Assembly: GCA_964187785.1 (NCBI GenBank)
Contig: OZ076421.1
Location: 35,898,001-35,962,000 of the forward strand
Reading direction: 5' to 3'
Origin: Amphiscolops sp. MND2022
Lineage: Eukaryota
Length of the DNA stretch: 64,000 nucleotides
Each line of letters opens with the position of its first letter. The first letter of the stretch is position 1. Positions 83-64,000 of the stretch are shown one piece after another. The translations under genes were made by a program, and so were the position numbers. The notes beneath the pieces were generated by a model that was not told the DNA's origin, made no database searches, and saw only the letters and a list, made by a program, of their open reading frames with translations.

Positions 83-84
83 TC

Positions 85-6015: not shown

Positions 6016-6580
6016 GAATAGTTACAATGTAAATAAAGAGAAGAGAACGAATGAAAAAAAACAACACTTGACAGAACCAAGTTTTGAGCTTGCATGTAAG
6101 CTCCAACTGAGTACTTCGTTTTTTCTTTTGAATCAGGAGTCAAAAGGGTAGTAGTGAAGCTTTCAAGTGCAAAGAGGGAAAGTTCGAACAAACGGAAAAC
6201 AAAATTGAATGCAGTGGAGAAACGAAAAACAGCGACACAAAACGACATGAAACGACTTGCCAAAGGTTTACTGTCTATGGATTTAAGTTACGTTTTTTTT
6301 GTGAAAAGAAAGGAACAAATAGCCTCAGCTAACAGGACCAACAAAAAAAGACAAAGACAGCTGCTCCTGAAATTTTTCCCTCCCTTGATTGTTTGAATAG
6401 CTTTGGGCTAAACAGCCAATATATAGTTTTTTGACATAGACTCAGTCGACAGATCGGCTTATGCTTCGGGCTGCAGTGCAGACCGACGACTTGCCCAGGG
6501 ATCCACCTGAGCCTGACCTTTCGCTCAGCGCAGTTGAAGGCTGACGCTCAGTGTCCTTTGTATATGGAGTCATCAAAATA

Positions 6581-12504: not shown

Positions 12505-13935
12505 GAATAGTTACAATGTAAATAAAGAGAAGAGAACGAATGAAAAAAAACAACACCTGACAGAACCAAGTTTTGAGCTTGCATGTAAGCTCCAACTGAG
12601 TACTTCGTTTTTTCTTTTGAATCAGGAGTCAAAAGGGTAGTAGTGAAGCTTTCAAGTGCAAAGAGGGAAAGTTCGAACAAACGGAAAACAAAATTGAATG
12701 CAGTGGAGAAACGAAAAACAGCGACACAAAACGACATGAAACGACTTGCCAAAGGTTTACTGTCTATGGATTTAAGTTACGTTTTTTTGTGAAAAGAAAG
12801 GAACAAATAGCCTCAGCTAACATGACCAACAAAAAAAGACAAAGACAGCTGCTCCTGAAATTTTTCCCTCCCTTGATTGTTTGAATAGCTTTGGGCTAAA
12901 CAGCCAATATATAGTTTTTTGACATAGACTCAGTCGACAGATCGGCTTATGCTTCGGGCTGCAGTGCAGACCGACGACTTGCCCAGGGATCCACCTGAGC
13001 CTGACCTTTCGCTCAGCGCAGTTGAAGGCTGACGCTCAGTGTCCTTTGTATATGGAGTCATCAAAATATCGAAGTCAAACCCAAGCTTCAGGAGCAACTA
13101 GTCTACAAGACACGCAAAAGAAACCCAAAAAAGGCAAAAAAATCAAACGTTTTCCAACAAATAAGTTTCAAAGTACCTCTCTAGTCAAAAACGGCTTTTC
13201 AACAAGCATTGTCGGGGTCGAGAAAGAGACAAAAAGTGAAAGAGGGTCTAGGGGGAGTAGCATAAACAAAGTGCGATAAGATACCGCCGATAGGCGGCGT
13301 AATAAATGAAACAAAGCATCAAACGAAACAAAAACTACCACAAAAAACTGTCATAGGGGCAAAACTGCAAAATATAGGCTCGAAAGATTGCAAGCAAAAG
13401 TTTTGTGGAAAAATTGAAGGAGCTGGACAATTTTTTAAAGGCACCAAACTCAAACGTCGATAGAGTTTGAAAAAAAAACATTAGACAAAAGTTAGCACAC
13501 AGCAAAAAAATTCAAAAATATCAATCTGCACAAGCCGCCGTAGGCGTTGCTACACTTTTTGACAAAACGGATTCCATTTTTGGCAAAGAAAACGCTCTAA
13601 CAATGTGTTTTGTTGTAAAACAAGTCACACTACACAGTTTCAGTTTTAACTTAGTTTGTGAATAATCAAACTTCTAAACTCTCGGGAAAACACTGCCGAC
13701 GACAAAGAAGAACCCAGTTCGTCCACTGTCCGCAGGAATCCAAAAACCAAAAGCGATAACTGCTGCAGAGACCTCACTGCATCTGTTGCACAAACCAGAA
13801 GATCGAAAAGACCACTGCACTGTCGAACATCAAGTTGCCATCCATGTGCCAGACCGAAAACCACTGAGAGTAGACCAGCATCACGTCGGCACACACTGAG
13901 AGCAGAGCAACATCAGCCAAGTTGTGGGGGGTGAA

Positions 13936-25204: not shown

Positions 25205-26125
25205 TGTTGGCGCCAGTCATCAGCAGGCAAAGAAAGTCGATTTGGAACATGCTGGTTGAGAAACAAGACTTAAACTCTTAAAAACTTAGATGAAAATTTG
25301 AAGAAAATCCAATCATCACAATTCTTTAAACCCCCCCCCAAATGGGTTTTCTCCAAGACTGTTAACCCTAGAGCCACGAAACTTGGCACACGCATGCAGG
25401 TACATAACCCAAACACACTGGCCAAGTTTCAAGGTCATCCACCCGTTATAACCCCCTTTACCCCTCACATGTGTAGTGTTCAAGGTCATTGAACCAAAAA
25501 TGTAAACTTTGTTATTTAACCATATGACCCACATTAGAATGTAACTCTGTTGAAATTCATGATATTTACATTGTGTAAACATGCTTTAAAGCCCGCCTAG
25601 TCAACATGCCAAAACCACCATGTGCTTTGTTTACATAGCCAATAACTTTAATAATTCACTTAAATGTCATTTATTTATACAACATATTTCAACTGATATT
25701 TGCTCTATATTTACTGTAGAATTGTAAACCACATTTATACCATTATTAGATAAAGATTTTCTCCACTGAATAGCTATAGTCAAGTTGGGTCTCAGGACCG
25801 CAAGACTTAGAAATCAACTTCTCAATCTTCACAACTTTTCGCTAGAGTTAGAGCGACTAAGTAGCTACTCTCATAGTTGGAGAGCCGGAGCGCGTGAAGA
25901 TACAGTGAGGGAAGTGTGTGCAGGATCACATCGGATCCAATTCAGTGAACAGAGGAATCGCAGGAGATTCCACGGGTCACATCGGACCCACCAGTCAAAA
26001 GATACAGTCCTTTAAAACAAGAAACCAGGAATTGTTTAGTGACGGTCCACAGCACTAAGCAACGGATCAGGGCGGCGTAAAGCTTGTCAAGCCTCAGCGC
26101 AGGATAAAGGCAAGCAACCGTTACA
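25205..26125 (+). repeat. 5' LTR of element 2
   Basis: TGTTGG...GTTACA, 921 bp. Confidence 0.96.
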
Positions 26126-26127
26126 TT

Positions 26128-26145
26128 TGGTCCGCCGACCCGGAC
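26128..26145 (+). promoter_or_regulatory. PBS of element 2 (tRNA-Tyr-like)
   Basis: TGGTCCGCCGACCCGGAC, 2 nt after the LTR. Its complement implies C1:G72 and A73, the tRNA-Tyr identity set. Confidence 0.75.
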
Positions 26146-26460
26146 AGCTCGTTGGTGGACGACCCGGACAACTCGTTGGTGGACGACCCGGACAACCCGT
26201 TGGTGGACGACCCGGACTAGAAGACGACTCGTTTGTGTACAACAGAGAAGATTGCCCAGAAAGAACAAGTGTCTGATTCTTGGAGTCTCTGACTTTGTGT
26301 CTCTGGGAGATTGGGCTACTGTGTCTCTGGGAGATTGGGCTACTGTGACTCTGTGAGCTTGGGCTATTGTGACTCTGGGTGTTTGGACTATAGTGACTCT
26401 GGAGTTGGGACTACTGTGTACTCTGGGTGTTGGGCTTTAGCGGCACTCTGGAGGTGTTTG
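26137..26460 (+). repeat. Two 24-bp minisatellites in the leader of element 2
   Basis: GACCCGGACAACTCGTTGGTGGAC x~3.5 (26137-26219) and CTGTGTCTCTGGGAGATTGGGCTA-like x~7 (~26296-26460). Confidence 0.9.
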
Positions 26461-26801
26461 TGCATCAATTCTATTTTTGAGACGAATTGTATTCTTTGGG
26501 AACGTATTCCTGATTGAAGCAAAGATCTGGTCTAAGACGTCATTGCAAGTAAATCCACCAAGTAAAGCCAAGGGATCAAGTCAGAGAGACAAGATCCACC
26601 GAAACAATCAAGTTCGTCAAAGAAGGCAAGTATAATCAACAGTATTTGGTTGATTCTTCAAGAATTGGCGATTGATTACCGGATTGAGCAGTTGACACTT
26701 TGTATCTGAGAAATTGCAGAGTTGGGATAAGTGACAAAGCCTACAAGAAACAATTGTGAAGTTCGAAAGCCCTCAGTGGAACAAAAGAGTCATATGAACA
26801 A

Positions 26802-29342
26802 ATGAAAGCCAAAAAGAAAGAAAGGCAAGTGATGCAGCACCCTCGAATGACAAATGTGTTTGAAGGAAGAAACACAAAGCAGAGCCAACAACTGATGGAA
26901 ATCAGACCAAAAGAGTTGGAAAATGCGTCAGATTGGTACGCGTGGTGCCTCTATTGGGATATTGTACCCCTACATGTGAAAAAGCTCCATACATTGGTAA
27001 AAGACTTGGATGACAAGCTCGATGAGGAAGGAGCTGTTGTATCCAAAAGCAAATTGATTGATCGGGTAATTGAATACCGCGAGAGAAGACAGGCGTTGCT
27101 GTTCTGTGTAGACTTTATGTTGAGTCTTACAAATGAAGAAACGCAAAGACAGCTCAGTCGAAGTGTGACTGAATGGGACGAATGCTTTGCGAAACTGGAA
27201 TCGAGTTGGGGATATTGGTTCCCCGATGTGCAGCAAATGTTGAAGTGTCCAATTGATGGGACAAAAGAGTTGAAACTGAGTCAGATGACAAATGGAACAT
27301 CTGCAGACGCAGCTATGAGATGCCCTCGCACAAGAAAGTTGAGGCAAAGACGTGTCCATCAGGCAAAACCTAATTGTGTAAAGAAAACAGCTAGTAAAAA
27401 GGAATCACTGAAACGGTCAAGAAGGACCAAGGACCAAGAAAGCTGCTGTGGTATGAGAGACAGCATATCTGAAGTGGAAAACTCAATCAACGATGTGACA
27501 TCACTACTCGAAGAAAACAGTAAGGTGTCTGACGTAACAATCCTGATGGACAACAGACCAACAGTTAGCACGAAGTGGTCTAATGGAGATCGACTGTTTC
27601 CTCTAGCATTAGAGAAAGCGGAAGATCAGAAATCGGATGAAGTCCAAGGCCAAAGAAGCGAGACTGGACAATTGGAAATAGAGGAACTGGGCAAACATCC
27701 AAAACTGGTTGAAACCAGAAGCAACAGAAGCTCAGTGATTTCGAAAACTTCAATTGCTAGACGAGTTCTTTATTTGAAAGTAAAAGCTCAGAAAGAGCAA
27801 GAAGAACTGCAAACCCGACTCGAGAAACTGAAGCCTGAAGCAATACAAATGGAAATAGCTGACTTGCATGAACAGCTTGCCCGCAAAGCCAGAGAAGCTG
27901 AAAAGGAAAGAGAAATAGCGGAAGTGTGGAGCAGTCAGGGGACTAGCTTCCCAAGTGTCTCATCAACCGACAGTTTCACGGAAGACTCAAGATGCATGGC
28001 TGAGACAGAAACAGTCGAAGACGGAGCTAAGTCCAATATTGCACTATCATTTCATTTGAAATCAGAGAATGCAGTGAAATTAGTTCACGAAGGAAAGTTC
28101 TCCGCGCTTAGGAGAGACTCAAAACCTCCAACAGAAGCCGATGAGCAAGCTGATAACGAAACGTGCAGAAAAGAAGCAATATCACAACCAGACGTGAAAC
28201 TTGCAAACCAAGGAACCTCGCAGCTCATCACAACGGAATGTATACAGAAATTGTCAGAAACATTCATTGTAGACAACGGTCGGCAAGACGTCCGTTCAGA
28301 AACCCTCCTCGTGGATACCAAACAGGTTTTGGAAGAAGATATTCACTTGGGCATGAATGAGCATTCGATAAGTCAAACAAAGGAGAACTTGAATCACACA
28401 ATGGCAGAAACAAGGAAGGAGCATAGATTCTTATCATTCGCATCAAGCAAACAATCTTCGGAAGAATTGAATGTGAAATTGGAGCTGCTGCAAGAGAGTG
28501 CAGAAAATACCGCCGTACAACTGGACATACAACAAGGGAAAATATTTGAAGTGACGATGTTTCATGACAGTACTCTACTTCTTGAAGAAGGAAACAAAAG
28601 TTTTGAATTCGACAAAAGGTATGGATTTGTGCATGAGCAACAATTTGCACTGCTTGATGATTGTAATGAAGAAGCAATGTATCGAAAGCTATGCCATGTT
28701 GCAGCAAAACATGACGAACCCGTTGAATGCAATGCCAAAGGTGAAACACGTACCATGATTGCAACCTTTGGAAAGAAATTTGATTTTGACTTCAAAGTAA
28801 GCCTTGTAGAAGAAACTATCCCGAGTAATAACAATGAGTGGAACCCTCGGATTGGTAATGGAAACTCTGGGATGGACGCGGTGGCACAGGCTAACGGCAT
28901 GGATAAAACTCAGTTGAGCAAAGGCCACCGCAAGCGACCGAAGAAACAAGCTTGGAAGTTTGAACACACCTCAAACCTATTACATGGAATGGTTGAAAGT
29001 GTTCAATTGACAACTGGCATCCTATATGCAAAGATTATGATGGATGAATTCGCAGATGAAATATCGCTAATGGAAACGCAATTTGGTTCTTCAAAAGCAC
29101 AAACAACAACAAGTTCGGAAAATGGGCCTTTCATAGGGCCGGCTGTATCATGGGAAGAAATGATGATGCAACTTGAATTATTTGGAAAATGGATTAAAGA
29201 AGAAGTTAGACAACTGGAAGTCAATGATTTGGTTTGGATAGTAGATGACAATGTGAAAAGAGCACACTACAAGACCAGCAGAGTGTTGGAAGTCTATCAT
29301 GGAAGCGATGGGCGAGTGAGATCAGCACTGGTGAAAACGTAA
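26802..29342 (+). CDS. 846-aa ORF of element 2: gag-like coiled-coil N-part plus IN C-terminal (DUF5641-like) tail, no PR/RT/RH/IN core
   Basis: Open 2.5 kb. C-terminus LEVNDLVWIVDDNVKRAHYKTSRVLEVYHGSDGRVRSALVKT; SNRSSVISKTS...coiled coil resembles the BEL gag N-region. Confidence 0.75.
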   Translation: MKAKKKERQVMQHPRMTNVFEGRNTKQSQQLMEIRPKELENASDWYAWCLYWDIVPLHVKKLHTLVKDLDDKLDEEGAVVSKSKLIDRVIEYRERRQALLFCVDFMLSLTNEETQRQLSRSVTEWDECFAKLESSWGYWFPDVQQMLKCPIDGTKELKLSQMTNGTSADAAMRCPRTRKLRQRRVHQAKPNCVKKTASKKESLKRSRRTKDQESCCGMRDSISEVENSINDVTSLLEENSKVSDVTILMDNRPTVSTKWSNGDRLFPLALEKAEDQKSDEVQGQRSETGQLEIEELGKHPKLVETRSNRSSVISKTSIARRVLYLKVKAQKEQEELQTRLEKLKPEAIQMEIADLHEQLARKAREAEKEREIAEVWSSQGTSFPSVSSTDSFTEDSRCMAETETVEDGAKSNIALSFHLKSENAVKLVHEGKFSALRRDSKPPTEADEQADNETCRKEAISQPDVKLANQGTSQLITTECIQKLSETFIVDNGRQDVRSETLLVDTKQVLEEDIHLGMNEHSISQTKENLNHTMAETRKEHRFLSFASSKQSSEELNVKLELLQESAENTAVQLDIQQGKIFEVTMFHDSTLLLEEGNKSFEFDKRYGFVHEQQFALLDDCNEEAMYRKLCHVAAKHDEPVECNAKGETRTMIATFGKKFDFDFKVSLVEETIPSNNNEWNPRIGNGNSGMDAVAQANGMDKTQLSKGHRKRPKKQAWKFEHTSNLLHGMVESVQLTTGILYAKIMMDEFADEISLMETQFGSSKAQTTTSSENGPFIGPAVSWEEMMMQLELFGKWIKEEVRQLEVNDLVWIVDDNVKRAHYKTSRVLEVYHGSDGRVRSALVKT

Positions 29343-29425
29343 GATGGAAAACTCAAAAGACCAGTAGTGAAACTGGCACCCATGTTCTACGAAAGTGTTT
29401 TTCGGGAGAAAAACAGGGCCGGCAA

Positions 29426-30345
29426 TGTTGGCGCCAGTCATCAGCAGGCAAAGAAAGTCGATTTGGAACATGCTGGTTGAGAAACAAGACTTAAACTCTT
29501 AAAAACTTAGATGAAAATTTGAAGAAAATCCAATCATCACAATTCTTTAAAACCCCCCCAAATGGGTTTTCTCCAAGACTGTTAACCCTAGAGCCACGAA
29601 ACTTGGCACACGCATGCAGGTACATAACCCAAACACACTGGCCAAGTTTCAAGGTCATCCACCCATTATAACCCTCTTTACCCCTCACATGTGTAGTGTT
29701 CAAGGTCATTGAACCAAAAATGAAAACTTTGTTATTTAACCATATGACCCACATTAGAATGTAACTCTGTTGAAATTCATGATATTTACATTGTGTAAAC
29801 ATGCTTTAAAGCCCGCCTAGTCAACATGCCAAAACCACCATGTGCTTTGTTTACATAGCCAATAACTTTAATAATTCACTTAAATGTCATTTATTTATAC
29901 AACATATTTCAACTGATATTTGCTCTATATTTACTGTAGAATTGTAAACCACATTTATACCATTATTAGATAGAGATTTTCTCCACTGAATAGCTATAGT
30001 CAAGTTGTGTCTCAGGACCGCAAGACTTAAAAATCAACTTCTCAATCTTCACAACTTTTCGCTAGAGTTAGAGCGACTAAGTAGCTACTCTCATAGTTGG
30101 AGAGCCGGAGCGCGTGAAGATACAGTGAGGGAAGTGTGTGCAGGATCACATCGGATCCAATTCAGTGAACAGAGGAATCGCAGGAGATTCCACGGGTCAC
30201 ATCGGACCCACCAGTCAAAAGATACAGTCCTTTAAAACAAGAAACCAGGAATTGTTTAGTGACGGTCCACAGCACTAAGCAACGGATCAGGGCGGCGTAA
30301 AGCTTGTCAAGCCTCAGCGCAGGATAAAGGCAAGCAGCCGTTACA
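29426..30345 (+). repeat. 3' LTR of element 2
   Basis: 920 bp, ~99% identical to the 5' LTR. Confidence 0.96.
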
Positions 30346-44149: not shown

Positions 44150-46970
44150 TTATCTATTGTAGAGGAGATCGATCAGTTCACCGTTGCCAAAAATATATAG
44201 ATCTGAAATTTGGTGATAGAAGTTTTGAACCTGCTTTTCATCCATTTCACATATATTTTCCTCGGACGGCAAGACACCCCACTTACGTAAAGCATTCATT
44301 AGTATTATTGCATGAGAATCTAGCCGATCAGTTTTTGCAGCGAAGTTCCAAACGTTTAGACTTCTGTTTCTTGTCTGCCTGGTTTGAGCCCCAATCTTCA
44401 AATTTTTGAAACCATTTCGAATCTCATTAATAGAGTACTTGAAAACTTCGTATATATGGTATTCAAAAACTGTGCCAATTTTTAGCTCTTTAAATTTTGC
44501 CATTACACTAGCCCTTGGTGGAAGTCGGAATGCTATCCGAATTATTTTTTTTTGAAGTAACATGATTTTTTGTAGTCTTGTTTTCGGGCTTAAACCATAC
44601 AAAAGAACCCCATATTGAATAATTGGCGATATATATGATCTGATGTATTGTACTAACTGTCTTTTGTTCAGTGTTTCTCTTAATTTGTAAAGAATTCCAC
44701 TCTGTCGTGCAAGTTTCCCAGTGATTTTACTAATGTGCACTTCAAAGTTCAATTTTTTATCAAAATGTATGCCCAAGTACTTGTAGTTTTCACATGAGGA
44801 AATTTCATGATCCCCAATTGCTATATTTGGATGATTTACTGATCTCTTCTCGAAAACAACAAACTTCGTTTTCATGTAATTACAGTCAACGTCATTTTCA
44901 TTCAGCCAGCTTTGAAATAAACTTTTGTCATCTGATCTAGAGTTTAATTTTTCTATCATAACTGTGTCATCAGCATATTTTACAACTTCGCTCTGCCAAT
45001 TTTCATCTGCACCCAGGTCATTAATATATACAAGAAACAAAAGTGGGCCAAGAATAGATCCCTGTGGTACTCCACGTTTTATCGATCTCATTTTTGAACA
45101 TTCATTTTCAATTTTAACATACTGAAATCTATTTGCCAGATAATTTTCCAAGAGCTTATGAGGAATCCCTCTAATACCATAATGGTACAACTTTTCTAAC
45201 AAGATTTTATGATCAACTGAATCAAATGCTTTCCTGAAGTCGACAAAAATGCAGTTCGTTTTGGCTTTGGATTGCCAATTTTCTTCTATTTTTTTATATA
45301 GCGATGTTGCTGCTTGGATACAATTTTTCTTTTTCCTGAATCCGTATTGATTTTCCGAAAGGAGTGAAAACTTTTCTAGATAGTTCATCAATCTTTCGTG
45401 GATTACTTTCTCAAATACTTTTGATAAATTACCCAATATTGAGATTGGTCTGTAATTTGAAGGTAAATTTTTTTCTCCGGCTTTAAAAATTGGAACTACT
45501 TTGGCAATTTTCATACTTTGGGGGAAAACTCCTTCTGAAATGCATTTATTAAAGGCAGTTTTTAGGTAAGGTCTAACAATTTGTGCCGCTTTCTTTAAAA
45601 CTCTGACATCTACACCATCTTTTCCAACAGATTTTTTGTTTTTCAATGTTGCGATAATTTTCAATATTTCATCATCATTTACTGGACGTAGAAACATAGA
45701 TTGCGGTTGGTTAACTTGCTGACTTTTCCATTTAGGAGCGGACGTGTTATTTTGTTTATCACAAGCAGTGACGAAATATTTATTGAAGTCTTCAACAGAT
45801 AGTCCTCCAAAATTTTTCACTTGGGTGTCAGTTCCTTTCATTTTTTTTAATATGTCTGTACAGTTCTTTTGGATTATTTTGCTCAATTTTGTTTTGAACT
45901 TCATTTCGTTTTGCAATTTTAATCTCCATGTTGACTTCATTCCGTTTCTTTTTGTATTTTTCGTGATCAAGCTCTGTTTTTGTTTTGATCCATAGCTGGT
46001 ACAGTTTATCTCTAGTAGCTATTTGCCGTTTTATACGATTTGTTATCCATATTTTTTTGCAAACGCGTCTTTTTACTTTATTTAGCGGAAAGTATTTGTC
46101 AGTGGCATCGTGAAGTAGTTGTGCAACCTTATCAAGATATGCTTCGGCTTCTGTGTTTACCTCATCAATTTTCCCCAGAGAATGACTCAAGTAAAAGAGA
46201 AACTTTTCACAGTAGAGAGGATCTTCTAATTTTTTCAAGGATCTAAATTCATAGATGTTTTCTACGACCTCATGGTATATATTGATATCCAACTTCAAGC
46301 TGTAGTGATCAGAGAATGTAGTCTTTACTATCAGGGATCGTTGAACAGGAACATTGCTGTATATCGAATCTATACATGTACTTGATGTAGCAGTTTCTCT
46401 AGTAGGTTCTCTCAAACTAACCAAATCAAGTCCTTGTGAAGACATCAAGTATTCTAGCGTTACCCGTGCTGCAAGGGACACGTTCAAGAGATCAATATTG
46501 AAGTCACCACATGCTATTTGTAAACCGTCGCCATTTTTCATCAACACTTCTTCAACGTGTTCTAGATACTGGTTTCTGTTTCTGGAAGGTTCACAGTAAA
46601 AACAAGAAACAGTGATTTTCTTTTTCTTTTTGGAGTCACTAATTTTTACTGATACTGACTCATGTATCTCATCAGTGTGTAATAGTTCTGCTTCCAAGTC
46701 TAACGTAACATAAATTGCTACTCCTCCACCTCGTCTTTTATTCCTAGTACTGGTAAATGGTCTGTGGTATCCGTCTATGCTATAAAGTTCTACATCATTT
46801 TCGTTCTTAAACCACGTTTCAGTTAGTGCGATAACAGATGGTTTTGATTCTGCTATCAAAATTTCTAGATCACCTAAGTTTGTTGATACTGATCTTATAT
46901 TATTATAGAAAAATGTCAACCCCTCTACCATACAGTTCTCGAAGTTTTGGTTTTTCAAATTTGCAGTCAA
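44150..46970 (-). CDS. LINE ORF2 (AP endonuclease plus RT), split by one extra base in a T8 run at 45841-45848
   Basis: YNNIRS, ALTETW, GGGVAIYV, CGDFNIDL, TCIDSIY, SDHY (APE); NYRPISIL, QYGFR, FVDFRKAFDSVDH, GVPQGSILGPLLF, YADDT, KYLG (RT). Confidence 0.93.
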
Positions 46971-50188: not shown

Positions 50189-52917
50189 GTTAGATTTCAA
50201 CAGTTTGAAATTTTTAACCGGCTGTTTGAACTTGACAGTTTGAACTTGAACCCAAAAGTTTGAACTTGACCCACTGAAATTCAAGTGTTAACGGAAAATG
50301 CTTACGTAATCATACAACCAATGAGATAGCTGTCTTTTATACTGAAAAAGTAAGTTAATTTCATGGTAATCACTAGACCGATTATCTCAAAATTGTTTAA
50401 AAAGCAACTGGTAAGAATTACAAACGTTTTCGTTATATTGTTGAAAAGTTCAATTAGATGTATTCCATAGCTTTGAATAACTGGTTTGAAAGTTTCATTT
50501 TCACTTATTTGCTCCGAAATAGGAGTTTTCCAACAGAAAAATTGAGATAAAAGTTGAAAATTATAACAATATTTGAGCATATTTTGAATTCTAAGCTCAA
50601 GAGCATCAATTGAGATAAATTAAAGCGTTCACAATTGCAGTTTTCGAATCTGGACATTTTTTGGTGCTGCTAAAAGTAAAACATTTCAGAATCCATTACT
50701 AATAGCAACCAATTGAAATCTAAAAATTGAATCGAGAGCATTTTTCTTCACAATGTGAAGAAAAATACACCATTAAATGCTTGAACCAGATGTGAGAATT
50801 GAATAGCTGAACATTTAATGCCGTATTTTTTCAGTACCGATGCAATACACTAAATTAATTAGCATTAATTAGCCATTAATTAATTACTATTAAATTAATT
50901 GGACTAATTAGCCTAAAATTTCACGCCGATTCATCCAATCTTCTAAAATCATCTCAAATATTTTCATTCACGTTTCATTCGAACGAATTTGCTGTTCATT
51001 TTTTCCTGCAACCTACGAATCTTTCTAACCACTCAGCAAAATTGTTCATCAAATTGGAAAAATACTCAGAAAGGAAATGAAAAAGCACAAGAATCATGGG
51101 AATTTCAATAATCGATTTTTCCCTAATGCGTTGCATTCAATAGGAAAAGCTCTTAAAAAACGCATACAATGCTAAAAAAAATCTCAAGCATATTCGAACC
51201 AAATTTTAAAAGGAAGTGCTAGTCCTGATTCCCGCTGTTTTTTTGTGATGAAAGGCCGCTCGGCTCTGAATATCCTGTTTCTCAGTTACAGCCAGTAGTC
51301 TGAATTACGTTTTTCCGTCTTCAATAAAACGGCTCCAGAAATATTGGCCTGATTCCTTGATTGATGCTAGGCTCCTGCGGGTCTCAATATCAAGCAAATT
51401 GCATCCCATTGCTCTACACTTTTCTACCTTCTTTTCTCGTTTTCTTTTCAGGTAATAACTCCTAAATAAGATACGAATGAAAAACTGTTTTCTAATTACC
51501 TGTTTTCCTCAAACAGGCTTCTCAAAGTAGCATTTTTTTTACTTTTTGGCCGTTATAACTTAATATTTATATAGCTTTTTAAAACATTGTCTGTTTGATG
51601 TCCGAAGTTCAAAACACCATGTGACTTCGAAATTCAGTTAAAATCTCTTTAAAAATTGATTCTCGTTTTTGAAATTCCTCATTTGTCATTTCACGACAAA
51701 ATTTATCGTCAAAAAGGTTTCAAAGTGAATGATGAAACAATCAGGGTACTTCATCCAACAGAAACATACCATTCCACCCACTGGATGTAAACAATGCAAT
51801 TCATCCATTTTAAAGACATTCTAAATCAACAAAATAAGTGTTGAGCGAGAATGCGAAAATTGGTATCAAAACTTCCCCATTTCAGTTTAATTTCTAATAG
51901 TCTCAATTCTGAACTGGAATGTCCTGAATAAACTGCCGTGCTCAATTTCTGATCACCAAGAAATTGATTGATGGAATATTCGAAAAAAAAATAGAACTGA
52001 TAATTGACTTGGAAGCATTTCAAAAATCAAAAAATAGCATGTCTACAGATTAATTTTTCAATTGATAATTGACAAATTTCCTAAAATGCTAGTTTAATTG
52101 CTCAAAAGTGAATAAAACGAGCCTTTCCATTCTTATATTGAATCCTTGAAAATGCTTTTAATTTAATGATAATGAATTATGTTCAAGCTTTCCGATTTTT
52201 TTTCCATTTTGGGTTCAATCGATCAAATTTTAATTTGCTCGTTCAATTCAACCGTGTCTGATTTTTTCTTGACCTGTTTGCATTTGCTAAATTGAACACA
52301 GCTTTGTGATTTCAAAATTAATCATTAAGGCTAGGTCATTCTATGTTCTATTCATTCTACCTCTCGGCTTCGTTGTTTTTCGTTTTTTCTTCAGAAAAGA
52401 AAATTCATAGTTTAAGCAGCATTGTTGCTCTTAATTTCGAAATGCAAGTATGTATGTTTTGGTCTTGAAATTAGTTGAATTTTGTTCACATTGTCTCAAA
52501 CATTCGATTTTCCAAGATCAAAGTGGATCTTTTAGGCGTCCAATTGTCATTGTTTCGATTCCGAGCCTAAAGATATTATTTAAAGAACCAAGAAATACTT
52601 TTTCCTGTTTTTGGAGACATCATAAGTAATTTTTCCAGATTGCAATAGATCTCAGGTCACATTGATTTTATGGCGACAAATGAACAACAAAACGGAAATT
52701 TCTTTCTTTCAAGTATGAAACAACCGGATGACGTAATTATGACTAGTTTTTGCCAATTGGTAATGGCGTGACCAAAGTGTGAACAACAACCGTGATTACA
52801 TAACCCTTAAAACAGATAGTCCGAGATGTGTCGCCAGTTTGGGAAACATATTATAGGTTGACTTTTCAGAGTGGCATGTGAAAATTTTGCGAGTTACGTA
52901 ATGTGTCGGAAAATTCC

Positions 52918-53117
52918 NNNNNNNNNNNNNNNNNNNNNNNNNNNNNNNNNNNNNNNNNNNNNNNNNNNNNNNNNNNNNNNNNNNNNNNNNNNNNNNNNNN
53001 NNNNNNNNNNNNNNNNNNNNNNNNNNNNNNNNNNNNNNNNNNNNNNNNNNNNNNNNNNNNNNNNNNNNNNNNNNNNNNNNNNNNNNNNNNNNNNNNNNNN
53101 NNNNNNNNNNNNNNNNN
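52918..53117. other. Assembly gap (200 N)
   Basis: N run. Confidence 1.
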
Positions 53118-55495: not shown

Positions 55496-56590
55496 TTCAA
55501 TGATATAAAATTGAATGAATGAAATTAGGTTTTTTAAGAGATCAGGAAATGGAGCTGACATTCATTCAAAATCAGTTCATTTTTGTATCCTTTCGAAATG
55601 AGAACTAGTAATCATGTGTGTCACAAACAATTTTTTGATGCAAATTTGACTTTTGATTAGATGGGAGTTATAGTAGCTTAACAAAATTGAGAACATGTTC
55701 ACTTAAAGCCAACCATATTCGATCAGATCGGCTAACTGCACAGTCGACCATACCAGCGGTTGGCTAATTGCACGGTCGCCAAAATGGGATGCATGCAAAA
55801 TCGATAAATCGCACTATAAAACTGTTGTTTTCGGGAACTACAGTTCGCTTTTGTTGAAAAGAAGGAAAGCAACAATCTATTCATCAACGTATTATAGGCC
55901 GTAGTAATCGTTTTAACATTCGAAATAAATGTTCGAATCAAACAAAAGAGCAACTTGTTTACAAATATTAATAAACAATAATTAAAGTTTCGAGATAGCA
56001 AAGTTCGAAAATCAAAATATATTTTTGGAACTAAATATTTGACGGTATCCGGAACTGAACCGGTGGTCTAATGATCGGAAGGCTAACGCGCATCCTCTAT
56101 GCTATAGCGCCTTGAAAATGAACGATTTTAATCTAATCCTATTTGTAAACAAAATTTAATGGGGCACGCAACACGCACAGTCATCTAACGGAAAGGTAGT
56201 GCAATTGCACGGTTCCCGTTCTTTCATGAGTTCCGTAAAAAGGTCATTGTATTGCCTCCGCAGAAAGTTGAAGCGGCCAATTATTCACGCAAACAGTATT
56301 TTCACAATTGAAAACTCAACTGCGTTCTTGCTGTTTTCCAACAGACATCCAATTCAGAGAAACATGGTTTTCTAGCTGCTCTCTCTAGATCCATCTTGTT
56401 CATCAGATTTTGACGGCTCGCGTCAATGCTATTTGAATGGATGCTTCAAAAGTTGAATGGAGCTGCAAAAACTCATGCTGATCTTGTAGCGCAGACCCTA
56501 GTAACATAGTATCATAGATCATTTTGTCAGCAACTTGAAAAAGCACTCGCGCAGAAGACTGAAAACTATTTGCCCAGGTACTACAAATTT

Positions 56591-56652
56591 GTTGTTCTAT
56601 TCTCGTTTGGGCTGAAAAGTTAACTTTTCAGCCCAAACGAGAATAGAACAAC
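56591..56652. repeat. Spacerless perfect 62-bp palindrome
   Basis: 31-bp arms centred on GTT|AAC. Confidence 0.97.
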
Positions 56653-57901
56653 TTTGAACTGATAGACTCATGTAAGTTTTCAGCCAGCGTTTTTTAAAGA
56701 AAGTGCACGGACTAAAACCCCATTCATTTTTTTTATTCAGTCAGAACGCTGTTTTTCCGTTTCATCGACCTTTTTTAACCTCAAAACGTTGAACAAATTC
56801 AGAAAGAAATTCATTTTTCAAAACGACTGCTTTTTGGCACTTTAAAAGATAATTAAGTCAGTTTAAATCAGCAGATTTCGCCCACTCTGTTTAGAAAATG
56901 TAATTGACTATTTTCAGTGGACTCCGCGAAAGCAAATTCGTTAACATTTCAGTTGTTTTTGCTGCAGGAGTAAACGAATGTCATTCTGATTGATGCACGC
57001 AATCGAAATTACTTAAGTGCAGTACTCTTCATTTTTGTGAAAAATGCGCACTCACTTTGGCATTCATCGAATTCCATTTTTTCGCAAGCCAGCATTCACT
57101 GAAAATTTCTACAGGACCTGGCTGATTCTTGACCATCCATCGTGTAAGTAGTTCATAGTCGAATCATTTAATTGCAGTCAAATCCGTTGCAAGGTTTAAG
57201 GGAGTTGTCAATTGATTTCGCTGCACACACTCAAAACATGCATTTAGTGGATTCCGCTGAAACAACCAGGAGTCCATTGTTAGGCAATGATGGTGCAGGC
57301 AAAATGTAGGAGCTTTCGAGAATTAACTACAATTAGATTTACTTAAAGCAGCCAAATTTTGAGTTTTTCTGTTCTTTTATTCAAAAGTAGGGATAAACAT
57401 AAGTAGACTTTTGGAGATTTTCGAAGATGCTTTTTTGTTTCGAACGTGTTCTGTCCAATTCCATCCGTTAACAGCCTAATCACTAAGTATTAATATGAAG
57501 ATTCTATCACGTGAACCAGAATAAAGCATTCCTCGTCCTGAAATACCTTGGAAGCTTGGAAAATGTCAGGAGTTTTTCACAAAATGATCAAAGCTGCGTT
57601 TAAAAAATCCCTAATACAAAAAGTCCTGAAGCGTAGGCAATCTTTGCTTCGTTTCCGGGTTTCCGGTCTATTACTTTTCATTTTTGTTATAGCTTGTAAC
57701 ATTTTTACAGTTCCTATTTTTTCAGACATTTATTTTTGATAAATGTTGGAGACTTTAGTTCCCAAAAACTACAGAACATTAACCAATATATTTAGCTTAT
57801 AAATTTGTATCACAACTAAGTAAAAACTTTTAAGCCCGACCTTTTTGGTCGCAGCCGGCAGTTGGAACAAATTACCATTTGAAGACTGAAAAATACTCCT
57901 A

Positions 57902-58147
57902 CCCAGCGTTCGACACCTTGAATATCTTGCCAAGGTCTTCGAAGAATCCAAGATAGAATCCAAGATCTTGTCAAGATATCAAGATAAAACCCAAGAGCTT
58001 ACTAAGAAATTCAAGATTTCAAGATTTTCCTAAGATCTTTCCAAGTTATTCAAGAATTCAAGATTTTCCTAAGATCTTTCCAAGATATTCAAGAATTCAA
58101 GATTTTTCTAAGATCTTGGCAAGACATTCAAGATGTCAAACGCTGGG
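57902..58147. mobile_element. MITE, 33-bp imperfect TIR, TA target duplication
   Basis: CCCAGCGTTCGACACCTTGAATATCTTGCCAAG versus the reverse complement of the right end (3 mismatches), TA on both sides, internal CAAGA-rich tandem units. Confidence 0.9.
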
Positions 58148-58193
58148 TAGCACTACACCCCCAGTGGCTCAAATGAGTCATCAATGTTCCCAG

Positions 58194-58368
58194 GTGCGCA
58201 ACTTCTCCGAACGGCTGTTGGACGCCAAGAGCGGGAAACGAACCGAGTTCCACAGTCCTGTGTTCTACACCAGCAGGTTCGGCTACAAAATGACCCTCGT
58301 CCTTTACCCTGACGGCATCGGGTCAGCCAAGGGGTCCCACATCTCCATATTCCTCAAAATACTCAGAG
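58194..58368 (+). CDS. TRAF MATH (TRAF-C) domain exon (phase 0-1)
   Basis: AG/GTGAGT bounded. VRNFSERLLDAKSGKRTEFHSPVFYTSRFGYKMTLVLYPDGIGSAKGSHISIFLKILR(G): canonical SPxFYT-x2-GYK and G-x-G-x-H-x-S-x-F motifs. Confidence 0.92.
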
Positions 58369-58405
58369 GTGAGTTGTCATTTGCCAATTTGTCCCTTGGT
58401 CGCAA

Positions 58406-58633
58406 TTGTCGTAGAGCCGTTTGTAGGTGATGCAACAACTCGGACCAGGCGCCGATTTTGGACCAAAAACCAGATTCGGACCAAACATATAAATTCGGAC
58501 CAAATTTATATATTCGGACAATTTATTACAGGGGTTACAGGCTAGTTACAGGGGTTATTTGGTCCGAATCTGGCTATGGTCCTAACTTGTCTTTTGGTCC
58601 GAATTGTCGTAGAGCCAGTTTTTAGAGGTGTAT
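58406..58633. repeat. CGGACCAAA-motif repeat fragment, insertion site of element 3
   Basis: TTCGGACCAAA / TTTGGTCCGAA copies in both orientations, TTGTCGTAGAGCC twice. Confidence 0.6.
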
Positions 58634-60308
58634 TGTCGCACGCATGGGTGAAATTTGTTTATTAGTTTTAATCTGTCAAGTCCTTGTTTGCATTTTACAA
58701 GGTACTATCTCGCGACGGTTCTGTTATTGATTTAACAAGTATAAGTCCCAACAAATAAATTTGCAACTTACTGATAAGGGGGTGCCTTGCGTGTACGTGC
58801 GAACAAAAGAAATTGCGTGAGTCGCGCAAGGCGGTGTTTGTAAATGAGCTTCCCGTTTACTGAAAATGTATGGTGAATAAATATGTTTAATTACGAATGA
58901 GTTGAGAATATTGAAAGTGAACAATTTCTGGACATAGCAACATTTCTTTCAATTGTTACAAATCTCAGATTAATAAAGATTACAACTTCACTTTACAAGA
59001 AGAAGTAATATAACTTTTACAATTTATCATTTAAGAAAATGAAACTATTCACAAATAATAAGAATTTCCCTTTTTCTTCGGAAATCTTTTTCTCAAACAA
59101 AATTTACAAATCCGTACTATTTTAAACGGAAGAGTTTTGATTTAGATGTCTCTATTCAGTAGAAAGTTGAATAGCATTAAGACTTTTTCATAATATGACA
59201 CTTTAAAACTTCAATCATCCCTTTTCTTATGTGAGTTTATGTAACTTCAACCTCATAGAAATTTAGTTCTAATAAGAATAGTCTAAGCTAAAGTTTGGTC
59301 AACCGCAGAATTGAAATCAGCGGAAAATAGTCTAAGGTAAGATTTTGTCAACCGCAGAATTGAAATCAGCGGAAAATAGTCTAAGTTAAGATTTTGTCAA
59401 CCGCAGAATTGAAATCAGCGGAAAATAGTCTAAGTTAAGATTTTGTCAACCGCAGAATTGAAATCAGCGGAAAATAGTCTAAGGTAAGATTTTGTCAACC
59501 GCAGAATTGAAATCAGCGGAAAATAGTCTAAGTTAAAGTCTCAGAGAGAGTGAAATCTCTACTGAAAGGTCTAAATAGTCAGACTCACCAAACCGGAGAC
59601 GAAATTGAAGAGAAATTTCTAAGTTAGAAATTTCGTGTAAGGGAAGATTGGTTCTGGAAGTTGAAGTTAAATCAAAGATGAGTGGAGAAATATTCTAAGA
59701 TGCAAGGGTATGATTAGAAGAGAATTATTGGATCTGAGTTATTAAGCAAGAAGTTTTGTTGAGTTAAATAGCAATCGAAATTGAAAGTGAAGGCGAGAAA
59801 TAGACTTTCTAAGTCTGAAGGGGAAGATAATAGTAAAGGGAGAGGAAAGGGGGTAAAGTAAGAAAGAAGAGCAGGGGTGAGGGGAGAGAAGTGGAAGAGA
59901 AGTGAAGAGAAACGAGAGCTTTTAAGTTTAAGCTCTGTCCGTTTCAATAAGTGTCTGAATCTCCTCGCCTGCGTTGGCCGTATATATACAGCCAAGCATT
60001 TCTTATCGTGCGCTGCGTAGCAGGCATGGCTTATCTTTCACCAATCATAGTTGGTTTCATATTTCAAATATACGCGGTATAATATAGAATTCTTCACTTG
60101 TGCAATTCCTTTCTCGTCACAGTACTTCATCATCATTATTACCATCGTTATGGCCGCCGCCTTATGGCCGCCATCTTCATCTACAACTTTCTCCCCCAAG
60201 AAACAAACGTTAGTTCTAGTTCATGTTTGTTTCTTTATTTGTTAATTAAATATAAACTGCACTTTAGCACCTAATTATGTTTGTTAAAGCGTTAGTCATA
60301 ACGCGACA
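58634..60308 (-). repeat. 3' LTR of element 3 (1675 bp)
   Basis: 6-bp inverted termini, TATA-like TATATATA at 59981-59988, preceded on the minus strand by GGGGGGTGAGC. Confidence 0.85.
59277..59540 (+). repeat. 49-bp tandem repeat x5 inside the LTR
   Basis: AATAG at 59277, 59326, 59375, 59424, 59473, 59522. Confidence 0.95.
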
Positions 60309-60345
60309 GCTCACCCCCCTGGCAGGATGAAAGAAAATAAATGAG

Positions 60346-60813
60346 TTATGGGTCAGACTGAAAGAAGGGGGAGTTATGTAGCGCGAGTGACTGAGGGGAA
60401 GGTTCCTTAAATTTGATTCTAAATATTATAGAGTCATTGTTTAAGAAGGCTTCTCTGAAGTTGACCAAAAGTTTTGTTTGGGGGATGAAATCTTCTCGCG
60501 TGAGGTGAGGAAGGGTTTAAGCGCTGATGTTGGTGTCATCTAGGTAGGTCTTGTCAGAGTTGTTTGGGAAGTAGGTAGACCACTTATTGTTTCTGTCCTT
60601 TTGATCTATGATGGAGATTTCCACTTGTCGGTCGAAAGGCCATGCTCGAGGGAGGGTGAAGTTGTTTGGGTAGATTCGTAGTTGTTCATCAAAGTGTAGA
60701 TAGTCTTCTAAGATTGGATTAAGGGTGTCGTCGTCCAGGTTTGGTATGTAGAATAATAGGTTGCAATTAGTAAAAGTGAAACATTGTTTAGATTGTTTAG
60801 ATTGGAGTAACAA
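60346..60813 (-). pseudogene. Second MATH/TRAF-like ORF remnant in element 3 (one in-frame stop at 60517)
   Basis: LRIYPN...AWPFDRQVEISIIDQ...then past the stop REDFIPQTKLLVNFREAFLNNDSIIFRIKFK. Confidence 0.65.
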
Positions 60814-60852
60814 ATCTCTACACGGATGGGCAGTTTGATTTTTCTTAGAGTT

Positions 60853-61570
60853 CTACTCGCTCATTTTCATCTTCCATTTTGATCTTTTTTTTTCGATGTG
60901 AGCCGTGGAGGGTACACTGAGTTCGCTGGAAAACTTATGAAGGGCATTCATTGATGCTGCGCTAATGAGGATGCTGGACCAAATATCAGATAGTTGTTTG
61001 GGGTGTACATTCTTGTATATTGTTATCCAGGGGAGGACCTGGTAATCATAGGCTGGATGTCTTTTGTTCCGAAGAAAGCTGGTAGGTCCCAATTTTCGGG
61101 TGACAGTATAAGTGTAAACCAGGAATCTTTGTCTTTCAAGTTTTTCCTTGGAAGAGGTTCTTGGCGCAATTCAGTGAAGTTCGCACGTTCGTATAACGAT
61201 AGGTTTTGCTGGTAAATGGGTTCACGAAAGCAACTACTTTTTTGTAGAAGATAGGGATGCGTTCGCATCATTAATTCATTGTGTGAAGGAGTGAGACGGG
61301 TTTCAGACAGTGTTGAAGCCAAGCAAGGCTTCCATCAGTGTTTGGGGACTTAGTTCGTGCCCCGTGAGCAAGTATCCGGCAAGTCTGCCTTTACCCATTA
61401 TTTCGGGTGACTTGATTCATCTCGTAGAGTTTATTTTGGGTCATTTCGCCGCAGTCGAAATGAGTTACTCGCAGTTTTTTAGCAACGCTAGCGAGGTTTG
61501 GCGTTGGACGTTGTAATATCACAACGGGCGCGTAATGGGCGCATAAAAAGAGTAAGTAAAATAATTTCAT
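60853..61570 (-). pseudogene. env: Decayed, internally deleted env-like glycoprotein gene
   Basis: MKLFYLLFLCAHYAPVVIL signal peptide, then VTHFDCGEMTQNKLYEMNQV; fragments GRLAGYLLTG, DGSLAWLQHC, ERIPIFY, DSWFTL, IWSSILISAASMNALHKFSSEL across frames. Confidence 0.55.
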
Positions 61571-61628
61571 TTCTGAAATTCTTCAGTCTTTGACAATCAA
61601 TCAGGAAAAATGTTTTTTATAGATATGT

Positions 61629-62242
61629 GGATCCACGGTAAGGCCGTAAAAAGGCAAGCCGTAATATCAAACCGGCAGCTTAGCTGGCACGACACTAAGC
61701 GGAGGTTAAAATTTTATAGTAGTAACCTCACTACTATTGGAAAGTGCCTTATGGAAAGATTGTTGTTTTTTGTTTAAAGTATAGGTTTCGGAGTAAGGCC
61801 GTAAAAAGGCAAGCCGTAATATCAAACCGGCAGCTTAGCTGGTACAACACTAAGCGGAGGTTAAAATTTTATAGTAGTAACCTCACTACTGTTCACACGT
61901 ACCTAAGAGAAGGAGAAGTTTATTTGTCTTTTAGTTTAGTTTAATGTTATGGATCCTGAAATAAGGCCGTAAAAAGGCAAGCCGTAATATCAAACCGGCA
62001 GCTTAGCTGGCACGACACTAAGCGGAGGTTAAAATTTTATAGTAGTAACCTCACTACTGTTCAAATGTGCCTAAGAGGTATATAAGTCTAGTTGTTTCTT
62101 TGTTTTGTTCAAGATTGTGGATCCGTAATAAGGCCGTAAAAAGGCAAGTCGTAATATCAAACCGACAGCTTAGTGGGCACTAACACTAAGCGGAGGTTAA
62201 AATTTTATAGTAGTAACCTCACTACTGTTAAAAAGTGCCTAA
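61629..62242. ncRNA. Four-unit array of a conserved ~98-nt putatively structured RNA module with divergent spacers
   Basis: Cores start at 61639, 61794, 61962, 62129; three internal hairpins; compensatory pair in copy 4. Confidence 0.55.
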
Positions 62243-62659
62243 ATGGAAATGTGAAAGAAACTAACTTCAACTATTTGTGAAGGTTCAACTGTAACTGTCG
62301 CTGATTGATTGTAGACTGGGAGAGAGTTTGTTTCTTCTTCTCGAATCAATGAAGTCGATTAGTTTGTTGAGAAGGAAAAGTGCTAACTGAGGTCATGTTG
62401 ACCGAGGATAACCCAAAGTTCTGGTTGGTGTAGCCCGAAGCTGTGAATTTCTACATGAATTATTGCAGCCTTTTTTTTTTAGACAATGGAGAGAATTACA
62501 AGAATTGTCTTTCTTTGTTGTCTATATAGTAAACTAAGTCTAAGTATTCTAGGAAGACCGGTGGGTCCAGGTTGTCTGCTTAAAATTTTGCTATCAGAGG
62601 ATTGCCCAGAAGAAAGGGTCCGAGAAAGTACCAAAGACTATTGAGGGTAGAAATGTATC

Positions 62660-63555
62660 TTACGGAGCTGGGGGTGAGAAGCGTTTGATAAGAATGCCGA
62701 AAGAGACGATATTGTCTTTAGCTAGAGTAGCGTTGAAAATAGTGAGGGGCAGGAAGTCTTTGATTCCACCTTCGATGCTATTTCCAGAAGGCGTTAATTT
62801 GAAGCTTCGGTGCAGTGACTGTCCGTTTTTGTTCTTGAAGTTTTTGTAAAATAGCCGTACAATGAGGGGGGTGGAGAGAGGTTTGTGGTCAGGGTCTCGG
62901 ATTGCAACGAAAATAGATACAAATTTATTAGTTTCTTGTTTGGAACATCCATTCCAATAAATTTTGACTGTTGCTATGAGGGGTGGCAATTCGAGAGGTT
63001 GCAAATCAAGGGGTCCTGTGGTAGCCCAGTGGTAATAGCTTCTGTGAAACGGGTGTGGCAGCCCGGCTGTTCTCAGATGTGTAACAACGATTTGGTCCAG
63101 TTTGATAAGTACCATTCCACCTCTTGTAGACACCTTTGTAAGTATTGGAGGTGATAGAGTTATTTGGGGGTCGTCATGGAGTATGAGAGTGTTTGACGTT
63201 GTTGACATCTTCAGAGTTGGGTCTTTGGGAAAATTGTTCAGGGGAGCTATTTTTGTATAGCAAGTGGTTGTATTTTGGTTTGAAGTAGTGTCTCAATGCC
63301 AGGTGGTTGGGAGGTTGACGGTTGACCAGGAGAGGTGGGCGTCAGAAACTGCTGGTTTTCCGGTGAGGTGATACCTGAGTCTGGGCGGTGAGGGCTTCGT
63401 GCTCTATTGCTGATGAGTATCTCGGAAATGTGCGTTTTCCCTGGTAACGTTGTAACATATTGTGGCAAACAAAGAAACAAAGTAGAGATTGAAATCAGAG
63501 TGAGTAAGTAGTTAACCCTAACTTCAACGAGTAGGGATTCCAACTGATTGCTCAT
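62660..63555 (-). CDS. Element 3 ORF-A: hydrophobic leader, P/S/T linker, divergent MATH domain (two ORFs, fused by +1 A in an A5 run near 63250)
   Basis: 63247-63555 (NYLLTLISISTLFLCLPQYV) plus 62660-63208 (GGMVLIKLDQ...VKIYWNG...FVSIFVAI...GGIKDFLPL...LAKDNIVSFGILI). Confidence 0.65.
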
Positions 63556-63569
63556 TTACTGAAGAAACT

Positions 63570-63587
63570 GCCTCACTAGTCGCACCA
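63570..63587 (-). promoter_or_regulatory. 18-nt PBS of element 3 (elongator tRNA-Met-like)
   Basis: TGGTGCGACTAGTGAGGC, 3 nt from the LTR. Complement GCCTCAC-TAGTCGC-A-CCA fits tRNA positions 59-76 with the GCCTCAC T-stem seen in elongator Met tRNAs. Confidence 0.7.
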
Positions 63588-64000
63588 GTTTGTCGCACGC
63601 ATGGGTGAAATTTGTTTATTAGTTTTAATCTGTCAAGTCCTTGTTTGCATTTTACAAGGTACTATCTCGCGACGGTTCTGTTATTGATTTAACAAGTATA
63701 AGTCCCAACAAATAAATTTGCAACTTACTGATAAGGGGGTGCCTTGCGTGTACGTGCGAACAAAAGAAATTGCGTGAGTCGCGCAAGGCGGTGTTTGTAA
63801 ATGAGCTTCCCGTTTACTGAAAATGTATGGTGAATAAATATGTTTAATTACGAATGAGTTGAGAATATTGAAAGTGAACAATTTCTGGACATAGCAACAT
63901 TTCTTTCAATTGTTACAAATCTCAGATTAATAAAGATTACAACTTCACTTTACAAGAAGAAGTAATATAACTTTTACAATTTATCATTTAAGAAAATGAA

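Follow-up and report, generated by a model that had tools for sequence, protein, structure and literature searches.

At the end of a 64,000-nucleotide stretch of DNA from Amphiscolops sp. MND2022 (NCBI GenBank assembly GCA_964187785.1, contig OZ076421.1, positions 35,898,001 to 35,962,000 of the forward strand; hereafter the window, numbered from its first letter) lies a long terminal repeat (LTR) element on the minus strand. Positions 58634-64000 cover its 3' LTR, the whole of its 3.28-kb interior and 410 bp of its 5' LTR; the rest was closed on a public contig (ENA ERZ25074608, ctg182183; L013 in our numbering of loci), located via the record of the exact protein of ORF-A, the one intact gene of the element, a record that names one contig. 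Since 1000 nt of downstream flank are identical between the two (0 mismatches), we take L013 to be the window locus. The features of the element are as follows.

58630-58633: window copy of the target-site duplication, GTAT on the plus strand (ATAC in the sense of the element); the second copy lies beyond the window, and ATAC is found at both LTRs on L013
58634-60308, minus strand: 3' LTR, 1675 bp, TGTCGC...GCGACA, seen as a direct repeat; aligned from end to end, it shares 92.5% identity with the 3' LTR of L014, a full-length relative
59277-59536, minus strand: 49-bp tandem array of 5.3 units inside the LTR (Tandem Repeats Finder)
60309-60322, minus strand: polypurine tract (PPT)-type G-rich tract adjoining the 3' LTR; the motif is also present in sister copies, L001 and L014
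60349-60696, minus strand: relic of a TRAF-like (MATH) open reading frame (ORF), by tblastn with the TRAF-like ORFs of L014 and L001; weak, sub-threshold Pfam MATH match
60898-61570, minus strand: relic of env (PF24664-type fusion glycoprotein), by tblastn with the env of L014 and L001; outer bounds
61629-62250, minus strand: four tandem structured modules of ~131 nt (singly, 62119-62250, 61952-62082, 61784-61914 and 61629-61759); covariance-model matches of 153-158 bits
62288-62544, minus strand: remnant of a small ORF located 5' of the modules, of which L001 and L014 have intact versions of 113-114 aa, by tblastn; at least one frame change
62660-63208, minus strand: ORF-A, intact, 182 aa, from the ORF list; predicted MATH/TRAF-C-like beta-sandwich
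63307-63399, minus strand: relic of the integrase C-terminus, 31 aa alignable, by tblastn with L001 proteins; the sole trace of pol
63570-63587, minus strand: primer-binding site (PBS), 18 nt, 3 nt inside the 5' LTR; 1 mismatch to the PBS common to L001, L002 and L005
63591-64000, minus strand: 5' LTR, cut by the window end; 1822 bp on L013, ending near window-equivalent position 65412

Boundaries and interior of the element

The total length of the element on L013 is 6778 bp, made up of a 5' LTR of 1822 bp, an interior of 3281 bp and a 3' LTR of 1675 bp. Within the window the two LTR stretches (58634-59043 and 63591-64000) are identical at 410/410 positions, as a preliminary description of this DNA, made from the letters and an ORF list alone, had reported; the direct repeat itself spans 58633-59043 and 63590-64000 with zero differences. 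On L013 the two LTRs differ by 1 substitution and a single 147-bp gap, equal to three 49-bp units that are extra in the 5' LTR. The closing LTR expected by that description is present together with the GTAT duplication, but it ends near 65412 instead of 65265, the difference being the three additional units. Copy number of the 49-bp array varies between the two LTRs of one element and among L002-L013, the LTRs ranging from 1578 to 1822 bp. Of two signals already recognised in the preliminary description, the 18-nt PBS agrees at 17/18 positions with that of sister copies and of the full-length element L001, and the PPT recurs in sister copies, L001 and L014. A search for the primer tRNA with ARAGORN detected no tRNA gene, either in the window or among the loci scanned (12 of 16). 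With direct LTRs ending in TG...CA, a target-site duplication, a PBS by the 5' LTR and a PPT by the 3' LTR, the element has the hallmarks of an LTR retrotransposon.

The interior (60309-63590) was probed by tblastn with the proteins of the full-length relatives L001 and L014, which in the sense of the element gave the order integrase relic, ORF-A, small-ORF relic, four modules, env relic and TRAF-like relic. This agrees with the earlier account of ORF-A, modules, env remnant and MATH remnant, which had missed the small-ORF relic between ORF-A and the modules. Apart from the 31-aa integrase relic these searches found no gag or pol sequence, and neither a CCHC knuckle nor a protease motif was found in the interior, so that the absence of gag and pol claimed beforehand holds and the coding capacity for both is gone from the window copy, making it non-autonomous. 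The env relic carries two large deletions, four frame changes and three in-frame stops, leaving ~225 of 715 residues alignable, and the TRAF-like relic has lost its N-terminal part and contains one in-frame stop, with 76-114 C-terminal residues alignable. The suggestion that the element keeps TRAF-like genes is not supported in that form: the bona fide TRAF-like gene is reduced to a broken C-terminal tail, and ORF-A is without detectable sequence relation to it.

Full-length relatives carry env and a TRAF-domain-only gene

Two env-bearing relatives from the same genome provide the reference for these relics. L001 is ~17.6 kb long, has LTRs 99.4% identical to each other, and encodes in order gag (PF03732), reverse transcriptase, RNase H, integrase, a 168-aa ORF, an antisense 211-aa ORF, an ORF-A homologue (193 aa, 51% identical), a 113-aa ORF, three modules, an intact env (PF24664, E 1.1e-33) and a 334-aa TRAF-like ORF. 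The last of these has a complete MATH domain at its C-terminus and is closest in PDB to TRAF5, TRAF2 and TRAF1. The body of the L001 LTR is unrelated to that of the window element, and what the two have in common are the LTR ends, the 3-nt spacer, the 18-nt PBS (17/18) and the PPT. L014, found through the env closest to the window env relic (a cluster of 128 sequences), encodes a gag of 483 aa, a pol of 1694 aa, three modules, an env of 715 aa and a TRAF-like ORF of 312 aa; besides the 92.5% identity of its 3' LTR, the PPT and the LTR-start motif are common to it and the window element, while its PBS lies outside the fetched locus. Identity to the window reaches 99.1% over a 656-bp tract of L014 that comprises modules 2-4 and the beginning of env, compared with 74% for the adjoining env, which points to recent recombination. 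An L014 ORF of 131 aa was considered as a diverged ORF-A and rejected.

A third, more distant element, L016, originates from a different sample; its order is gag-pol, antisense ORF, a single module, env (55% identical) and a 440-aa TRAF-like ORF, again without ORF-A. L014 and L001 match PF03732, RVT_1, RT_RNaseH, Integrase_H2C2, rve and PF24664, the make-up of env-bearing Ty3/gypsy elements; the Ty3/gypsy assignment is one of domain content and gene order in these full-length relatives, the window copy being without the genes in question. All three TRAF-like ORFs match MATH_2 or TRAF-mep_MATH above cut-off, none of them (312, 334 and 440 aa) has a RING or zf-TRAF domain, and they are TRAF-domain-only proteins. 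This post-env ORF is conserved across lineages whose env proteins are ~55% identical.

The PF24664-type env family in ERZ25074608 (proteins P0059-P0178) forms clusters of 850, 764, 290, 290, 275 and 268 distinct sequences, and the genome holds thousands of env-bearing element copies. Neither phmmer nor a 16-sequence profile against PDB returned anything that would place this env in the F-like or gB-like class, and no env relatives were found in IMG/VR. The antisense ORFs are 210-231 aa long and occupy the pol-env interval of L001 (9309-9944, minus strand), L014 (7565-8260, minus strand) and L016 (7633-8265, minus strand); those of L001 and L014 are 33% identical over 214 aa, that of L016 is not detectably similar to them, and the antisense ORFs give no Pfam match and are absent from the window copy.

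The reduced form has been copied recently

Seven other complete reduced copies (L002, L005 and L008-L012) each have their own perfect 4-bp duplication at a different site, with LTRs of 1578-1723 bp, interiors of 2.9-3.3 kb and a common set of env pieces. Across the eight complete copies (L002, L005 and L008-L013) the LTRs of a copy differ by 0-6 mismatches, and the preliminary view that the reduced form was itself recently copied is therefore supported by the sequence comparisons. ORF-A is intact in 8/8 of these young copies and all other element genes are broken. The ORF-A cluster contains 36 distinct sequences at ≥90% identity, one exact sequence occurring on five contigs.

More divergent copies also exist. 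L003 and L004 have interiors 80-91% identical to the window element and LTRs only ~70% identical to its LTRs, and of the pair ORF-A and TRAF relic they keep ORF-A only. L015 is an older copy with LTRs 84% identical, a different env deletion and a broken ORF-A. Segment-wise identities among the copies are mosaic, as would be expected from recombination between co-existing lineages.

ORF-A is a predicted TRAF-C-type fold in a constrained family

Neither ORF-A nor its L001 homologue matches the Pfam MATH models, a PDB profile search with ORF-A returned nothing, and hhalign of ORF-A against the element's own TRAF-like ORFs gave a probability of 0.1. A profile search of 1.84 billion representatives found 19 relatives, one of which, a remote homologue, shows a weak MATH_2 match at 19.9 bits, below the cut-off of 32. 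Matches of the same profile to the long repeat proteins P0055 and P0058 were judged spurious. An AlphaFold (AF2) model built from 18 family members (pLDDT 81.7, pTM 0.75) predicts ORF-A to be an eight-stranded antiparallel beta-sandwich of the TRAF-C type, MATH-like by predicted fold alone. When this model was compared with PDB by Foldseek the top 50 of 50 matches were MATH domains of TRAF, USP7 or SPOP (template-modelling, TM, scores of 0.45-0.58), TRAF3 being the best (E 6.5e-6, TM 0.56), and TRAF3, TRAF1 and TRAF2 together giving E ~1e-5 and TM 0.55-0.58. In the viral structure library BFVD the model is closest to the TRAF proteins of iridoviruses. The MATH identity proposed in the preliminary description is thus borne out by the predicted fold and not by any Pfam match.

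Ratios of nonsynonymous to synonymous divergence (dN/dS; pairwise Nei-Gojobori) of 0.12-0.17 between ORF-A subfamilies, including the window copy versus L005 at dS ~1.1, indicate that the protein family is constrained. In L003 and L004 ORF-A is 4-5 points better conserved than its flanks. For selection on ORF-A within the reduced lineage, the same comparisons offer a signal that is weak or not shown. A 225-aa distant homologue (~31-34% identical) lies at 10001-10678 of L007, where no LTR, env or pol was detected nearby, and may represent another reduced family or a host copy.

The modules are covarying RNA-like structures upstream of env

An alignment of 17 module copies from six loci (~130 nt) was folded with RNAalifold into three hairpins and a short fourth. 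Seven base pairs show compensatory, two-sided changes, a number reached in 0 of 500 shuffles, and slid controls gave 0-3. With the covariance model L014 yields three copies, L015 two and the distant L016 a single one (52 bits), which lies directly upstream of env and shows further compensatory changes in hairpins 1 and 2. From the end of the array to the ATG of env there are 10-59 nt in L001, L014 and L016. Full-length elements have 1-3 modules and reduced ones 2-4. Between L001 and the window the modules are 81-92% identical, compared with ~66% for ORF-A and env, which makes them the best-conserved nucleotides of the comparison.

A permissive Rfam scan of 56000-64000 gave no match within 61600-62250, and a hammerhead or retrozyme identity of the modules was dropped for want of any Rfam match. 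An H-type pseudoknot pairing the loop of hairpin 1 with the invariant stretch on the 5' side of that hairpin was likewise rejected, both sides being invariant in the close copies and the loop side lost in L016. The module motif has no match in JGI metagenomes or IMG/VR. On these comparisons the modules are best read as putative cis-acting RNA of the sense strand.

The element lies within a host TRAF-like gene

One host exon in the window adjoins the element:

58165-58368, plus strand: host exon encoding the N-terminal part of a TRAF/MATH domain (MATH_2, E 1.1e-12; TRAF-mep_MATH profile positions 2-46)

Its bounds are predicted from AG/GT dinucleotides. The continuing exon is found beyond the element at 6284-6544 of L013 (minus strand; TRAF-mep_MATH positions 44-85, E 1.3e-6), and by this exon prediction an intron interrupts the MATH-coding part of a host gene of TRAF-like type, with the element inside that intron in antisense orientation. 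A distance of 265 bp separates the element from the MATH exon in the window, which is encoded on the other strand and lies beyond the LTRs. The MATH-related sequences of the element itself are oriented opposite to this gene and accompany the element to other loci, and so were not borrowed from it.

Two repeat units lie close to the host exon. Just upstream of it, 57894-58155 holds a 39-bp tandem repeat of 3.6 copies with an inverted partner, and between it and the element 58386-58616 holds a short unit bounded by 33-nt direct repeats; both are possibly small non-autonomous DNA elements.

Interpretation and alternatives

We consider the window element to be a recently active, non-autonomous derivative of an env-bearing Ty3/gypsy (errantivirus-like) lineage that has retained ORF-A and the module array, and we place the probability of this reading at roughly 0.85. 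Descent would have proceeded through several internal deletions and recombination from an env-carrying Ty3/gypsy lineage that is very abundant in the same genome. For reverse transcription and integration the element retains the LTR ends, the PBS and the PPT, with Gag, Pol and Env, none of which is encoded, probably supplied in trans by full-length relatives of the L014 and L001 type. The element is multi-copy, and candidate partners with common cis signals are present in L014 (through the LTR, 92.5%) and L001 (through the PBS, PPT and LTR ends); the satellite-like, reduced character proposed in the preliminary description, as well as the env-bearing helper type that it postulated, are thus corroborated, the latter by gag-pol-env elements in the same assembly. 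Intact in the reduced form are ORF-A and the four-fold module array. The module might serve as a cis-acting RNA signal of element transcripts, in export, in packaging or as the leader of the env messenger, and our best guess is that the stripped form retains the modules because they are such a signal.

Several points weigh against this account. ORF-A is absent from L014, though L014 has the LTR family of the window element, and therefore no single sampled element could be the parent. ORF-A is without a Pfam match and without profile-level similarity to the element's own TRAF-like ORF. Among copies with shared deletions the pairwise Nei-Gojobori dN/dS of ORF-A rises to 0.55-1.1, and all copies were ascertained via an intact ORF-A, which makes the sample a biased one. 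Mobilisation in trans is inferred from common signals and recombination, not observed. Finally, folding of the module is no worse on the opposite strand (z -4.45, versus -1.3 to -2.5 in sense); the acting strand and even action at the RNA level are provisional assignments, and G-U pairs favour the sense strand only mildly.

One alternative concerns the part that ORF-A plays in the reduced element. At distinctly less than even odds, the gene could be a mere passenger, intact through the youth of the copies and of no benefit to the element that carries it. The high ratios among copies with shared deletions would fit this, as would the broken ORF-A of the old copy L015, the fact that L014 and L016 manage without the gene, and the ascertainment of copies through intact ORFs. 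Against a passenger stand the dN/dS of 0.12-0.17 across subfamilies, conservation exceeding that of the flanks by 4-5 points in L003 and L004, and the intact state of ORF-A in 8/8 young complete copies in which the other genes are all broken. For the modules, it is conceivable but unlikely that they are the leader of the env messenger (splice acceptor and 5' untranslated region), without a role in the reduced element and refreshed by recombination. A pyrimidine-rich run and an invariant AG stand at the start of each module, only 10-59 nt separate the array from the env ATG in L001, L014 and L016, and modules 2-4 of the window are 99.1% identical to those of L014; yet the reduced element, which makes no Env, has 4 modules where its full-length relatives have 3, 3 and 1, and among reduced copies the number varies from 2 to 4 without the array ever being lost.

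We find it quite improbable that the modules act as DNA, that is, as repeated regulatory sites in the manner of an internal promoter or enhancer. The invariant A/T-rich, TATA-like block found in each module, in the loop of hairpin 1, would suit such a role, tandem repetition is typical of enhancers, and folding energy gives the sense strand no advantage, but compensatory double changes in three helices (7 pairs, 0/500 shuffles) are not expected of protein-binding DNA sites. A derivation of the MATH signal from the host gene at the insertion site, for which the genuine MATH exon 265 bp away might have spoken, is already refuted, as is the idea that the whole feature is a duplicated segment or an error of assembly: the host exons lie beyond the LTRs and are encoded on the other strand, the seven other complete copies contain both ORF-A and the TRAF relic, each copy with a duplication of its own, and the public contig reads the same at the locus (0 mismatches in 1000 nt of flank). 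The unique segmental duplication that the preliminary description had named as grounds for abandoning its view did not turn up, the seven other complete copies being at different sites.

As to function, ORF-A would be an accessory protein of one branch of the lineage, perhaps a host-adaptor mimic or a replication accessory. A speculative and rather doubtful possibility is that the two MATH-fold accessory genes of this clade act on host TRAF-type adaptor signalling in the way of viral TRAF proteins, and that the satellite persists since ORF-A and the multiplied RNA module give it preferential use of helper particles. The earlier idea of TRAF-like accessory genes as decoys of host signalling is a hypothesis.

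Relation to known systems

Non-autonomous LTR elements of the LARD and TRIM types possess LTRs, a PBS and a PPT without gag or pol, are multi-copy, need an autonomous partner with matching signals and are usually non-coding. The window element differs from them in retaining an intact accessory ORF and an RNA module array. Retroviral cis RNA elements, such as constitutive transport elements, Rev-type response elements and direct repeats, are structured, sometimes repeated and located near env. They offer an analogy for how the modules might work, although there is no Rfam match and membership is not claimed.

Env-carrying Ty3/gypsy elements, or errantiviruses, are widespread in animals (Chary & Hayashi, eLife 2026, PMC13524379), and L014, L001 and L016 resemble them in their LTRs, tRNA-type PBS and gag-pol-env organisation as multi-copy, recently active elements of an invertebrate genome. 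That paper makes no mention of MATH/TRAF cargo, ORF-A, an antisense ORF or RNA modules, the env described here matches PF24664 without assignment to the F-like or gB-like class, and the window copy is without all three core genes. The combination of an env-like region with a MATH_TRAF_C domain is known from the giant planarian gypsy-like element Burro/GYPSM1 (Arkhipova & Yushenova 2019, PMC6431247), and Burro-type elements of Dugesia carry MATH_TRAF_C in a separate accessory ORF (PMC6431247). Those are likewise gypsy-like LTR elements, but they are giant and have the domains within a polyprotein of ~4900 aa or in an upstream ORF, whereas here, compared by description, the TRAF-like ORF is downstream of env, another MATH-fold ORF is located in the pol-env interval, and element length is ~15-18 kb. 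In bdelloid rotifers TelKA2n (Rodriguez et al. 2017, PMC5408684), which is related to an env-bearing LTR element but is itself non-autonomous, has likewise lost most of gag and pol and kept a downstream ORF; it keeps env, however, whereas the window element has lost env and keeps an accessory MATH-fold ORF. Viral TRAF proteins are encoded by iridoviruses, for example ORF111L of ISKNV (PMC3352826). These virus-encoded TRAF domains are the best BFVD structural matches to ORF-A, but they belong to DNA viruses of fish, and the similarity is one of fold only, at 10-13% identity.

It is already known that env-bearing elements of the gypsy type occur across animals, that planarian gypsy-like elements can carry MATH_TRAF_C cargo and that non-autonomous derivatives exist. 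In the literature searched we did not find a TRAF-domain-only gene downstream of env that is intact in three diverged lineages, a second MATH-fold accessory gene that is the sole gene to survive in a successful stripped-down derivative, or a conserved, covarying RNA module before env that is multiplied in the derivative. The element would represent a natural minimal set kept by a helper-dependent element, and as such might indicate which cis signals and accessory functions invertebrate endogenous retroviruses have. If ORF-A and the multiplied module do favour the use of helper particles, an accessory protein would be paired with a cis RNA element in an invertebrate retroelement.

Other repeats in the window

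Several further features lie elsewhere in the window. Positions 1-13100 hold two tandem repeats of ~6.25-6.49 kb with BEL/Pao-type ORFs (DUF1759, weak RVT_1). At 25205-29845 direct repeats 4.22 kb apart and 97-98% identical surround an ORF of 846 aa that has DUF5641 at its C-terminus; the whole is probably one more LTR element, of the BEL/Pao type. A non-LTR retrotransposon occupies 44150-46970 on the minus strand, with an EEP endonuclease ORF followed by an RVT_1 ORF, and a run of N, seen as X in translations, lies at ~52900-53100. The perfect 31+31-nt palindrome at 56591-56652 matches mir-186 below threshold on each of the two strands (43.6 bits; gathering score 70) and is most likely a repeat hairpin, not an established miRNA.

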